This document shows, one piece after another, positions 3,001-56,582 of a stretch of DNA of 64,000 nucleotides. Source of the stretch: Paragordius varius (lineage: Eukaryota; Animalia; Nematomorpha); assembly GCA_964247055.1 (NCBI GenBank), contig OZ176053.1, positions 8,184,001 to 8,248,000 of the forward strand, given 5' to 3'. The stretch's first letter is position 1. Every line of letters starts with the position of its first letter. The translations under genes were made by a program, and so were the position numbers. The notes under the pieces are model-generated. The model saw only the letters and a program-made list of their open reading frames with translations, had not been told where the DNA came from and searched no databases.

Positions 3001-4771
3001 AAACAAAAACCTTTAATTTTAGGTAAAAAGCGAATGCAACACACAAGAAAACTCTTATTTTTATTTCATAGGTGTTTAAAGTGTTCCAAAATCAAAAAAT
3101 TTATTAACAAAGTTTGATACATATATAAAATATAATATATTTAGCATACCACTCTTTGATTGATTAAATGGGCTATGAATTTAATTGAGGAGAGACATAC
3201 GTCTTTGTCATTTCGGCGGAAGGCTTTGCGGAATAAAACTACTAATCGTTTAACCAACAACTCCCCAATTTGTGGAAACTAGCATGTGTTAAAATACATG
3301 AGATATAATTTAAAAAAAAACACTAACCTATTATAATGGACCAGAAACCAAATTGGTTCTCAGTTTAAAAAGAAATTTTAGCCAATCAGTGAATTGTAAC
3401 TCGAATCGTAACTCGTTTCAAAAAATAGTTTAATCAACAATCTACAGAACATGTGTCACCAATTTTATAATATTGTATCTAGTGGTATACATTATATGGC
3501 CTAAAATTTTAAATATTTTTTAAATGAAAACACCGATTCCACCAATTAGAATAGATATTTGAGAGATGGTTTTTTATTTAGTAAATATATACTTGGCAAC
3601 TTTACACCATATAAAAACAAAGCCTAAAATTACAACAAGAAAAAGCTAAAACACAATTATTTAAAATATCTATTATAAATAAACATGAGATCAATAAATA
3701 TGTAACTCATGACGGGCTAGAGTTCCGATGGGCACAAACAAAAGAAATAATTTAATAAAACTTGAAATAAAAAATCAATCCAATAAAACACTGGAAATAT
3801 CGGATTAGAATGAACAAGTCATGTTCAAAGACATATATATTTTTTAAACATGAAAAATTAATAAATAGAATTACTGTCAAATCCGGCACATCCCCTAAAT
3901 TACATAATTTAATATCATAACAAAAAATGTTTATAACGCTTATAAATATGGAAATAGCCAAACCTAATATATGGGATACTCTTAAAGGCGTACCGCTATT
4001 TAATAATGAAATCTTCTTTAAATATGATAAAATAATTTTTTTTAATATTTTTCTGTGCAATTGAAAATTTACCAATAAAAAATGAAAACCATAATTTCTT
4101 AAACAAAAGGAATGCGTTCAAAAGTCATTAATTAAAAGTTGCAATTCGACACAAAAAGTTCCATGCTTAAGGGTGACCTTTTTATGATAAGAACTATTAG
4201 AAAGTGGCCCTATTGGGTGACATTAATGACGCATGACGCATCGTAAAAAAGACGAAAAGTTTTTTTGGATAAAGCCTACCTATTTATTTTCTAATATATA
4301 TGATCATCAATATTCATGGCTTTTGGAAAAATTAAATAATATATTCACTTTAGAATTGATAATGGCTAATAGACAAGCATAAACATTGGTAAAAACAGTT
4401 GATAAAACTTGAGCTCTCATTAGGGATTGTACTACAATACCACGTCCTCTTATAATATTATATTCTAACAAATTTAATGCTATATCTTGAACATTTGACA
4501 CGTTAACTTTATTAATTAATCCATTAATTTTTTTCTTCAGATTCATCCAGTTCATACGTTGATAAGCCATTCTATATATTTAAACAAAATTTTACGATGA
4601 TTTATCCGTCAATTGACTTTGAAGTAATTTTAACTTGGAAGGTGGCAAATATGTGGATGATTTATTGGCTAAAACCTTTTCGATCAAAGTTTCAGGCGTA
4701 ATTTCGTCAGACTTCTTAGCCCGCTTCCCTTTTTTATCGTATTCGTCAGCTGCCATGTTTCCCCGTGTCAT
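1..4771 (-). CDS. CWC22: Pre-mRNA-splicing factor CWC22 (MIF4G + MA3 domains), 11 exons visible, 3' end beyond the window edge
   Basis: Exons (minus): 4771-4596, 4571-4349, 3278-3150, 2919-2784, 2332-2229, 1911-1809, 1511-1377, 928-795, 579-502, 427-275, 76-<1, all GT-AG and phase-compatible. Translation contains [127 protein letters not shown], which match CWC22. Confidence 0.96.
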
Positions 4772-4864
4772 ATTAATTTATGAATGTATCATATTAAAAT
4801 GAAGATAAATTCTTGATTTCCAAATATAACTATTCTTCTAATTGCTATCTGGAATGATGATCCG

Positions 4865-5806
4865 ATGGCTAATAAAACCACAACTAATCCGTTTGTACCA
4901 ACAAAAGAAAAATATATTTCCAATAATTCCGATATTCCTATGAAAATGAATGGACCCTTTACAAGTTTATCCCCAGCCTCTATAATTTCAAATATTGATG
5001 CCAAATTTATGCAAACCGATATGTCTCCCTTAGAAAGTGCTCAACAAGTTCACTTTACTACATCAAACAACATAAAGAGTGGACCGAACATTACAACGTC
5101 TCTTGCTAATAGCAAAACAACTGCTAAAGCTTTTAATCCATCGACCATGAAAAATAATATAGGTAATCCTAACATGCCTAGAAACTCATCTTCCTCATCC
5201 CATAACCCATTAGTTCGTATAGTAGGGGGGAGCAAAACTGCAGCACCTCCACCTACTTATACGGGCGAAAAGCGGGCCAGAATGATTGCCAAAACAAATC
5301 GAAAATGGGTAAGAATTACTACAGTCCTACTTTATAGCATAGCTGTTAGCTTAGCGGCTCTTCTCCTTGCCTTATATTATACCCTTGCTTGGGATCCCTA
5401 CGATAGAAAAACGGGAAATAATTCTACTGAAAATAGTTCCATTGCAACATCAGATGTAGTAAGCAGTAAAACGGAAGTTATAAAACCCTTACCCAGTTTT
5501 GAGGAATTGGTTGAAAGTAATTATGATCATAAGAAAATGTCTTCATTACAGGCCATAGATCATTTACAGATTGTTCGGCCCAAAAATTTAATCATTATAC
5601 TGGATGATAAAAATGAAAATTATATTAATTTTACATCATCCATTGCTCAATCAGGATTTGTGATTCTGGACAAAAATTTAAACGAGACAAATAAAACTAA
5701 ATATGACAAAATCATTTCTACACCAAAGCCATATAATGGCACTTTATTAAAAATGCTAAAGACACCCAAAAATACTTCTAAAACCCGTCGTAATTTATTA
5801 TTTTAG
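4865..5806 (+). CDS. InaF-motif single-pass membrane protein, 313 aa
   Basis: Open ORF containing [36 protein letters not shown], the InaF motif (basic patch, KWVR, TM helix, YY..W.P); flanks are low-complexity. Confidence 0.8.
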
Positions 5807-54716: not shown

Positions 54717-55277
54717 ATGATATTGTCAAAAATCAGACGAAATCGCAATTTAAATTTTATTTTCTCGGTAATAGGCTTGATCCTCTGTGTTTATACCTTG
54801 TATGTTGAACAAAACTATAATAATCAAGAATACAAGCCATTTTGTGAAATTAATGAAAGGATAAATTGTACTTCTGTCTTAAATTCACAGTATATTAATA
54901 TTAATTGTAGAGGGAGTAAGGGATTTGGTTTTTTGCAAAATTTCCTTGGTGAAAAACATATTTTAATTCTTCCGAATCCGATTTATGCCATTGTGTTTTA
55001 TTTAATACAAATTTCATTAGGTAAAATTATAGTAATTTAAGGAAATATAATATCTCCATATTCAGCATATATTCAATTAATATTATCAATATTGGCAAAT
55101 GCCTCATCAATATGGCTTGGCTATATTTTAATATACAAACTTTATAATTTATGCATTGTATGTGTAATGAGTTATTTTATCAATTTTATCCTATTATTAA
55201 TACACATTCAAAAATTTAACATGATTACTCATATGAATCCAAGCAATATCACAACATTGAAGAAAAAAAACAAATAA
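54717..55277 (+). CDS. VKORC1: Vitamin K epoxide reductase complex subunit 1 (VKOR family), 3 exons
   Basis: Exons 54717-54889, 54911-55020, 55042-55277: GLILCVYTLYVE, loop cysteines FCEINERINCTSVLNSQGSKGFG, and the active-site CIVC in LYNLCIVCVMSYFINF. Confidence 0.93.
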
Positions 55278-55316
55278 ATATATTATTTATTTTTTGTGAA
55301 CATATTTATTAAAAAA

Positions 55317-56582
55317 TTATCTTAAACCAGCTATTCCTCTTCCACCATCCACAGGCAGGTTTACACCAGTTATAAATGTAGCTTGGTCTGACGCTAAAAA
55401 AGCAATAGCTTCTGCAATTTCTTCCGGTTCTGCAACGCGTCCTAATGGATGAGTTTCTTTGCCACGTTCCAAAAACTTTATAAATTGTACATTAAAATAT
55501 AATTAAAACAATTATAATAAATAGTTTTTTATCCTTTATAACAGAGATGATTCATTAAAACCTGACAAAAATTATTTTAACTTTCACATTCCGCTAAATC
55601 TATTTATATTCTGTATGATTCTATTTATGAAAATAACTCATTGCAAATATTCCTAGACAAAGTGGCTTTATTACATCAAATTAATGTTAATTTATACAAT
55701 AATAGGATGAAAACTAAATGGAAGGAAATATTATTTGGAAATATCTTCGACTATAAATATTTAAAATTATAATCGTAGTATCATTGTATTAACTTGATGA
55801 TAAGATTCAGGTGATAATCCACCACGTTTTTGCAATTCAGTTTTAACAACACCTGGATTGACTGAGTTGACCCTAACACCTTTGGAGGCAAGATCTAAAG
55901 CGACACATCGTGTAAATTGATCCAGAGCTGATTTTGATACGTTATAGGCTAAAACGTTTGCAAACTATAATGCAGAAAATTTTTCATAAAATCTATTTTT
56001 ATCTAATAATAAATAATTCCAATAAATTACACTCCGTAATCCGTTTACGCTTGAAACATTGACTATATTTCCTTTTACCGGGATAATGTATGGGACCAAT
56101 AACATAGTCAAATAATAAACAGATCGAACCTTGATTTATTATTTAGCATTATACATTAAGGTTCATTATCTTATCATACTGTTCCATGGAAGTGTTTTCG
56201 ATGCCACCAAGTTCGAGGATACCAGCATTATTAACCTCTAGTAAAAAAATTTAATTACAAGCACGTCAATATTTTTGTAAGCTTTTGTGGCTTCCTTTAC
56301 TAATTTTTCCACATCTTCATCTTTAGACAAATCTCCAGCATAGATAATTGGCTATAAAATTATAATAATTATACAGTGTTACGGTTAGCTGAAACTTCGG
56401 CACATTTTTTCTGTATTGTTTGAAGATTAACTTGATTACGGCCAGTCAAAAAAAGTTTGGATCCTAACTTTGCAAAATATATTGCGGTAGCAGATCCTAT
56501 ACCTGAACTTGCCCCTAAAAGTTACTCAATGCGTACCAGTTATTAATATAATTTTGTTCAAAAAATAATCTCCAAACGGCAT
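55317..56582 (-). CDS. Classical short-chain dehydrogenase/reductase (FabG-like SDR), 7 exons
   Basis: Exons 56582-56537, 56514-56375, 56351-56259, 56235-56155, 56129-56031, 55964-55794, 55475-55317. Motifs ITGASSGIG, IDVLVNNAGI, NIVNVSS, catalytic [28 protein letters not shown] possible in-frame upstream ATG lies at 56705. Confidence 0.94.

Follow-up and report, generated by a model that had tools for sequence, protein, structure and literature searches.

We analysed a 64,000-nucleotide (nt) stretch of the Paragordius varius genome assembly (contig OZ176053.1, positions 8,184,001 to 8,248,000; hereafter the window). It carries five ordinary housekeeping genes, METTL5, BCAT, VKOR, SDR, and CWC22, whose coding regions are interrupted by 14 very short segments that we refer to as mini-introns. 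Read unspliced, the genes are broken by stops or frameshifts. With the segments spliced out, each is left with one open frame. Spliced METTL5 is a protein of 208 amino acids (aa) with the DFGCGSG and NPPF motifs, and spliced VKOR has 172 aa. The SDR protein has 262 aa and contains TGxxxGIG, NNAG, and YxxxK once introns of 66 nt and 318 nt have also been removed. Splicing likewise restores the frames of the N-terminal half of BCAT and of CWC22 exons 1 and 2. The genes use the standard genetic code. Read on the coding strand, each of the 14 segments starts with GT and ends with AG, and its coordinates are precisely those of the original prediction, an earlier reading of this DNA made from its letters alone. 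The occurrence of GT...AG exactly where the frames break, in 14 of 14 cases, cannot be chance.

Thirteen mini-introns fall within 21 to 25 nt (five of 21 nt, three of 22 nt, two of 23 nt, one of 24 nt, and two of 25 nt), and the remaining one measures 31 nt. The mode of the distribution is 21 nt and the median is 22 nt; none of the 14 is shorter than 21 nt. A and T together make up 89% of mini-intron interiors, 82% of whole mini-introns, and 71% of the window. Expressed as GC content, the mini-introns stand at 18%, their flanking exons at 34%, the long introns of the same genes at 23%, and the window at 28.9%. Among the six mini-introns with a length divisible by three, five contain an in-frame stop. 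VKOR intron 1 is the only one that does not; if it were retained, the luminal loop of the enzyme would be seven residues longer and would gain a cysteine. A gene such as METTL5 with introns of this kind escapes open reading frame (ORF) calling and any gene finder that forbids introns shorter than about 30-40 nt. The coordinates of all introns are collected in Table 1.

We compared the splice junctions with homologues by searching the exons separately and scoring whether neighbouring exons map to neighbouring residues of the homologue. Gapless junctions were obtained for 13 of the 14 mini-introns, the references being human proteins, the PF00106 profile, a solved VKOR-like protein, or animal BCATs. 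The numbering offset of METTL5 to human METTL5 (9ohl_C, 6h2u_A) is equal on both sides of every intron, at +3 for intron 1, +2 for intron 2, and +4 for introns 3 and 4. A 30-nt version of METTL5 intron 1 (32960-32989) was rejected, as the junction is gapless against human METTL5 only with the 21-nt version. In CWC22, residue 59 of exon 1 corresponds to residue 149 of the human protein and residue 1 of exon 2 corresponds to residue 152, with two intervening residues on each side (5mqf_T, 4c9b_B). Reading through VKOR intron 1 creates a 7-residue insertion relative to the vitamin K epoxide reductase-like protein of PDB entry 6wv8. The last mapped residue of VKOR exon 2 corresponds to chain residue 236 and the first of exon 3 to residue 240, with three intervening residues on each side (6wv8/6wv9).

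The remaining junctions were placed on family alignments. SDR exon borders fall between PF00106 positions 7 and 8 (intron 1), 81 and 82 (intron 3), and 108 and 109 (intron 4), and the flanks of intron 2 map to the profile up to position 47 and from position 53, with the frame restored. Across introns 2 and 3, the alignment of spliced BCAT with 12 animal BCATs has no gap. When tblastn reads through BCAT intron 2, a 6-residue gap opens there. BCAT intron 1 was placed from the reading frame: the ATG at 33129 is followed by a 21-nt coding micro-exon and then by a TAG that is in frame and arises at the 3' splice site. METTL5 and CWC22 are about 55-70% identical to their human counterparts, and BCAT exon 3, searched exhaustively, is 50-57% identical to sequences of a sea spider, birds, a fish, and a mussel. 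Word-indexed protein searches with VKOR, BCAT exon 3, and an ORF carrying an InaF motif returned nothing or distant animals only, and two long ORFs had no exact match on record. The prediction that 14 GT-AG introns restore conserved proteins is thus borne out, with exact boundaries, intact frames, and homology behind all junctions but that of BCAT intron 1.

Variation between individuals provided a separate line of evidence. We aligned four DNA runs (X1, X3, X4, and X5, representing three samples and two studies) to METTL5 and BCAT at 32388-33683 and found 35 single-nucleotide polymorphisms (SNPs) and one insertion/deletion (indel). In the spliced frame, 24 of the 26 exonic SNPs are synonymous, against an expectation of 24% (p=2.5e-13). 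The synonymous SNPs are located in METTL5 exons 1-4 and in BCAT exon 3. Because both 22-nt METTL5 introns shift the frame, this pattern requires the frame to jump as splicing predicts. The mini-introns of this region hold nine SNPs and the indel in 163 nt, a SNP density 2.5 times that of the rest of the stretch (p=0.024), and none of the nine SNPs lies at the GT, at position +3, or in the last three bases. Because the exonic SNPs are synonymous in this proportion and the mini-introns are rich in SNPs, we conclude that purifying selection acts on METTL5 and BCAT as read in the spliced frame and that the segments evolve as introns do. Contigs of X1, X3, X4, and X5 cross the segments at full depth, without any joint that skips them. 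Since this holds for contigs of three samples, assembly error and bulk removal of the segments from DNA are excluded.

The same runs yielded observations on their sources. Across 32388-33683, X1 is about 1% heterozygous, and X4 and X5 differ from the window by about 1.5%. X3, which is labelled as a different organism, contains the locus at about 4x depth and shares variants at 32669-32720 and 32949-32997 with the second X1 haplotype. Given this depth and these common variants, the same species is therefore present in the sample of X3, as a parasite, as a cobiont, or through mislabelling.

Four of the mini-introns occupy intron sites of human VKORC1 (VKOR introns 1 and 2) or of mussel BCAT (BCAT introns 2 and 3). 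The introns of human VKORC1 lie after coding nucleotides 173 and 283, as read from the variant names c.174-136C and c.283+124G (PMC8007013). The window VKOR introns also follow coding nucleotides 173 and 283, after exons of 173 nt and 110 nt. Mussel BCAT (locus L001) has a 1513-nt phase-0 intron after aa 41, which corresponds to the 21-nt BCAT intron 2 of the window, and a 2326-nt phase-0 intron after aa 145, which corresponds to the 31-nt intron 3. Later introns of mussel BCAT match the long BCAT introns of the window, and the mussel intron after aa 108 has no counterpart there. The mini-introns are best read as ancient introns that shrank, not as new insertions, because four of them share their sites with introns of mussel BCAT and human VKORC1.

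The splice signals of the mini-introns are sparse. At the 5' end, GT is followed by A at position +3 in 12 of 14 cases and then by A/T, and G occupies position +5 in only one. The 3' end is TAG in 11 of 14. The earlier view that the mini-introns are too short to contain both a branch site and a distinct pyrimidine tract is not supported: counted from the 3' end, A stands at position -8 in 10 of 14 and T at -3 and at -5 in 11 of 14, within a T-rich stretch from -3 to -6, an arrangement that leaves room for a branch adenosine and a short T stretch. An A at -8 with a short T stretch is also the layout proposed for the mini-introns of myxobolids and Dicyema (PMC13644364). The long introns of the same genes begin and end like the mini-introns. 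One set of weak splice signals seems to serve both classes.

We consider it very probable that the mini-introns are true spliceosomal introns of the U2 type, with GT-AG ends, that have been reduced to about 21-31 nt, and we infer that they are removed at the RNA level. In the anatomy that we propose, a reduced 5' site consisting of GTA and A/T, with no G at +5, would be followed by a few A/T bases. A branch adenosine would lie about 8 nt before the 3' end, followed by a T-rich stretch of 3-5 nt and then (T)AG. About 13 nt would be needed between the 5' site and the branch and about 8 nt between the branch and the 3' site, which would produce an apparent floor near 21 nt. Recognition would probably occur across the intron (intron definition), aided by the contrast between introns of 18% GC and exons of 34% GC. 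The mini-introns would constitute a promoter-near class, and the later, ordinary introns (66-1070 nt) would tolerate transposon insertions. The hard floor at 21 nt that had been proposed agrees with a mode that coincides with the minimum, where five introns stand and below which there are none, but the sample comprises only 14 introns and ciliate spliceosomes handle 15-16 nt.

The census of modelled introns in the window separates two size classes. Nine of the 23 introns measure 66-1070 nt, and none lies between 31 and 66 nt. In genes that contain both classes, the mini-introns are the first, consecutive introns (introns 1-3 of 8 in BCAT, 1-4 of 6 in SDR, and the first in CWC22). All 14 mini-introns lie at most 477 coding nt from the ATG, and all larger introns lie at least 399 nt from it. 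Intron length correlates with distance from the ATG, both among the mini-introns (Spearman 0.64, p=0.014) and among all 22 introns (0.84, p=1e-6), and the mini-introns do not shorten along any gene. It is possible, though doubtful, that intron size is set by distance from the transcription start, such that introns in the first 400-480 nt or so would be driven to a spliceosomal floor of about 21 nt by promoter-proximal intron-definition splicing and later introns would be free to grow. A window-wide scan looked for pairs of open frames, each at least 30 codons long, that are connected by a GT..AG segment of 12-45 nt, and it found no excess over control dinucleotide pairs at any length, the signal being swamped by alternative frames in long exons. 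The NCoR-like gene of the window has further candidate introns of about 31 nt, such as 28850-28880.

Several observations weigh against these interpretations. BCAT intron 1 lacks homology support, the N-terminus being unconserved, and retention of VKOR intron 1 would not be lethal to the frame, as its length is a multiple of three and it contains no stop. The frequency of A at -8 (10 of 14) is not significant against the A-rich background. The length gradient is based on five genes in one window, picked by a reader who was seeking small introns. Finally, METTL5, BCAT, VKOR, and SDR were all absent from the runs labelled as RNA for the species, for which X9-X13 were searched with sampled words of METTL5 and BCAT and X9-X12 were aligned to VKOR and SDR at 85% likeness. 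Under the species label, three runs marked 'RNA?', with 19-30 Mb of contigs each, lack all four of these housekeeping genes. Either the 'RNA?' runs are not ordinary transcriptomes of the species, or the species label covers something diverged.

We weighed four other explanations against the same evidence. Small frame-breaking insertions resemble assembly errors and the decay of pseudogenes. The same segments, with SNPs of their own, nevertheless occur in independently assembled contigs of other individuals, and the five genes are otherwise intact, with exonic SNPs that are synonymous in 24 of 26 cases and splice-site dinucleotides at 14 of 14 segments. The boundaries, the independent contigs, and the synonymous SNPs refute this explanation, which has virtually no chance of being correct. 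Segments that are short, A/T-rich, and precisely bounded, and whose removal restores genes, could also be cut from DNA rather than spliced from RNA, as happens with the internal eliminated sequences of ciliates and in the chromatin diminution of some nematodes. This is very improbable here: the boundaries are GT..AG in 14 of 14 rather than TA..TA, the sites are ordinary intron positions in mussel and human, and the segments are present at full depth, with no skipping joint, in all four runs of the three samples.

The two other explanations accept that the introns are real. Some of them might be spliced inefficiently or optionally, as in Microsporidia, so that a share of the mRNA pool would retain them and they would act in regulation through premature stops instead of being constitutive. 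This would suit their weak splice signals and the in-frame stops present in all but one of the six introns with a length divisible by three. In Microsporidia, the splicing of very short introns is about 25% efficient (cited in PMC13644364). We find this unlikely, as housekeeping genes with four consecutive introns of this kind would give little product and in-frame stops are expected by chance in sequence so rich in A/T. Alternatively, the genome could come from a lineage with documented cases, a myxobolid myxozoan or a dicyemid, in which such introns would be ordinary for the taxon. The GC content of the window (28.9%) is close to that of Henneguya salminicola (29.1%), the intron sizes fit the medians known from myxobolids (22-27 nt), whose 5' site is likewise reduced to 'GTa' (PMC13644364), and Dicyema pairs tiny introns with 49% repeats (PMC6736024). 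A run that bears another organism's label also contains the DNA, at the low depth expected of a parasite. Against this origin, transposon-filled kilobase introns stand beside the mini-introns of the window, whereas myxobolid and Dicyema introns are nearly all short, and the GC content of Dicyema is 36.7%. The window proteins are well conserved: METTL5 and CWC22 share about 55-70% identity with the human proteins, and BCAT shares 50-57% with BCATs of vertebrates, a mollusc, and a sea spider. In this they differ from the proteins of myxobolids and dicyemids, which are very fast-evolving groups. The window further encodes typical bilaterian regulators (an NCoR-like SANT gene and an Ldb LIM-interaction domain). 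An origin from either lineage is decidedly unlikely.

Table 1. Introns and coding regions modelled in the window. Coordinates are positions in the window; introns are listed in gene order.
Feature	Coordinates	Strand	Remarks
CWC22 intron 1	4572..4595	-	24 nt, phase 2; GT..AG; junction colinear with human CWC22
CWC22 intron 2	3279..4348	-	1070 nt; exon 2 ends ...INSK, exon 3 begins FPQIGEL
NCoR-like gene intron in SANT domain	26581..26650	+	70 nt, GT..AG from sequence; one intron modelled in this gene
METTL5 coding region	32373..33089	-	627 nt, 5 exons; intron lengths 5' to 3': 21, 22, 22, 25 nt
METTL5 intron 1	32969..32989	-	21 nt, phase 1; GT..AG; two SNPs within
METTL5 intron 2	32826..32847	-	22 nt, phase 2; two SNPs within; exon SNPs on either side synonymous when spliced
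METTL5 intron 3	32631..32652	-	22 nt, phase 1; one SNP within
METTL5 intron 4	32523..32547	-	25 nt, phase 0; one SNP within
BCAT, all introns		+	lengths 5' to 3': 21, 21, 31, 625, 901, 196, 82, 839 nt
BCAT intron 1	33150..33170	+	21 nt, phase 0; from reading-frame logic only; least supported of the 14
BCAT intron 2	33228..33248	+	21 nt, phase 0; colinear with 12 animal BCATs; mussel intron at same site
BCAT intron 3	33561..33591	+	31 nt, phase 0; gapless junction; two SNPs and a 1-nt insertion polymorphism
BCAT introns 4-8 and exons between	33721..36822	+	boundaries set with mussel BCAT as guide
BCAT intron 4	33721..34345	+	625 nt
BCAT intron 5	34507..35407	+	901 nt
BCAT intron 6	35551..35746	+	196 nt
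BCAT intron 7	35833..35914	+	82 nt
BCAT intron 8	35984..36822	+	839 nt
VKOR coding region	54717..55277	+	exons of 173, 110, and 236 nt; intron lengths 21, 21 nt
VKOR intron 1	54890..54910	+	21 nt, phase 2; multiple of three, no in-frame stop
VKOR intron 2	55021..55041	+	21 nt, phase 1
SDR coding region	55317..56582	-	789 nt, 7 exons; intron lengths 5' to 3': 22, 23, 23, 25, 66, 318 nt
SDR intron 1	56515..56536	-	22 nt, phase 1; splits TGxxxGIG cofactor motif
SDR intron 2	56352..56374	-	23 nt, phase 0; variable-length loop
SDR intron 3	56236..56258	-	23 nt, phase 0; just before NNAG motif
SDR intron 4	56130..56154	-	25 nt, phase 0
SDR intron 5	55965..56030	-	66 nt, ordinary short intron after four mini-introns; GT..AG; PF00106 140-144 contiguous
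SDR intron 6	55476..55793	-	318 nt

The surroundings of the five genes combine a high repeat content with tight gene pairs. A tandem array lies at about 14-19 kb of the window, and decayed long terminal repeat (LTR) retrotransposon fragments, of RNase H and integrase, lie at 49000-51700 (50-51 kb). Two ORF remnants at 38700-39760 look mariner- and non-LTR-like by eye, and Pfam gave no match for them. In X1, the words of a repeat in BCAT intron 5 (34604-35035) have depths of 50,000-230,000, compared with about 310 for single-copy sequence, and the repeat is thus present in several hundred copies. This repeat probably explains why runs X6-X8, which bear three other organism labels, contain 6-22% of the words of a 3-kb stretch.

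The start codons of METTL5 (minus strand) and BCAT (plus strand) stand head to head, 39 nt apart (33089-33129), so that their promoters and 5' untranslated regions must either overlap or be extremely short. The stop codons of VKOR (plus) and SDR (minus) lie tail to tail, also 39 nt apart (55275-55319), with an AATAAA within about 15 nt of each stop, so that their 3' ends must either overlap or be tiny. CWC22 (minus, ATG at 4771 or 4756) is likewise head to head, at about 93 nt, with the InaF-motif ORF (plus, ATG at 4865; 313 aa, single exon, PF15018). The genome had been described as rich in transposable elements and not compact. The kilobase, repeat-holding introns beside the mini-introns agree with this description, but the genes are locally packed, with spacings of 39, 39, and 93 nt.

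Two further genes were recognised in the window. The NCoR-like gene (21057-29661, plus) contains long exons of low complexity in which Asn, Gln, Ser, and Thr abound, and its SANT domain is split by a 70-nt intron; around this intron we presume that the gene is colinear with NCoR. An ORF at 62689-63108 (minus) encodes a LIM-interaction domain of the Ldb/Chip type (PF17916, E=3e-11), and the 5' part of its gene must lie beyond the window end. The gene set is animal and, by family occurrence, looks bilaterian (NCoR-like SANT, Ldb LIM-interaction domain, InaF motif). An Rfam search and a tRNA scan of the window gave no match.

If the mini-introns are spliced as we propose, an animal spliceosome would work at 21-25 nt in a genome that keeps kilobase, transposon-laden introns. 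Extreme intron shortening would then not be just a by-product of genome compaction, and the 'microintron' layout of flatworms could reach this extreme size. Claims of gene loss for such genomes would need rechecking, because genes such as this METTL5 are invisible to pipelines that bar short introns; the same annotation point has been made for flatworms (PMC6530080). Horsehair worms have been described as showing 'rampant loss of universal metazoan genes', and Gordionus has a BUSCO score of 71.6% (10.1101/2023.06.26.546503). Should intron size be set by distance from the transcription start, part of this gene loss and of the low BUSCO score would stem from annotation artefacts, since it is precisely the 5' ends of such genes that are broken by pipelines in which the minimum intron length is set higher.

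We compared the mini-introns to short introns in other systems. Introns below 30 nt were long thought absent from animals, and among the 51 animal genomes of a 2026 survey, only those of myxobolid cnidarians and of Dicyema, which are reduced, were found to contain them (PMC13644364). The median intron of myxobolid Myxozoa is 22-27 nt (Hadjez et al. 2026, PMC13644364). The original prediction had named dicyemids among the known cases of tiny introns but omitted myxobolid Myxozoa (PMC13644364) and the microintrons of flatworms (PMC6530080). The literature that we searched contained no report of such introns for Nematomorpha, and the GC content and repeat load of the window fit published horsehair-worm genomes (GC 26.9%, 64% repeats; 10.1101/2023.06.26.546503).

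Myxobolids and Dicyema resemble the window in having GT-AG introns of about 20-27 nt with a GTA 5' signal and a 3' signal that is essentially AG. Ancestral intron positions are also common to both, and in both the A-rich positions a few bases before the AG are proposed as the branch site. Myxobolids and Dicyema differ in that tiny introns make up nearly their whole complement, with a median of 22-27 nt and, in Dicyema, a mean of 38 nt, and in that their genomes are reduced, at about 60-190 Mb (PMC13644364, PMC6736024). In the window, by contrast, mini-introns occur only in the first 480 or so coding nt and are followed by transposon-holding introns of 66-1070 nt, and the proteins are much less diverged. 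Ciliates (Paramecium with 20-34 nt, Stentor with 15-16 nt) and chlorarachniophyte nucleomorphs (18-21 nt) likewise have A/T-rich GT-AG introns with narrow lengths at the minimum. Unlike the animal described here, they are unicellular, all of their introns are tiny, and their floors are lower (15-18 nt). Because of these lower floors, 21 nt is not a universal steric minimum.

A close parallel in layout comes from the flatworm microintrons described in Opisthorchis felineus (Ershov et al. 2019, PMC6530080). As in the window, these form a discrete short class beside kilobase introns, lie adjacent to one another, and are enriched at the 5' ends of genes. They have also lost the polypyrimidine tract and were missed by annotation with a high minimum intron length (PMC6530080). 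The flatworm peaks lie at about 37 and 90 nt, whereas the mode in the window is 21-23 nt, below the long-assumed animal limit of 30 nt. What is new here is the test by variation between individuals, the exclusion of DNA removal, the exact positional homology of the BCAT and VKOR introns, and the gradient of length with distance. We conclude that the phenomenon is a known one to which the window most likely adds a new lineage, in which the layout of flatworm microintrons is combined with the size of myxobolid introns.

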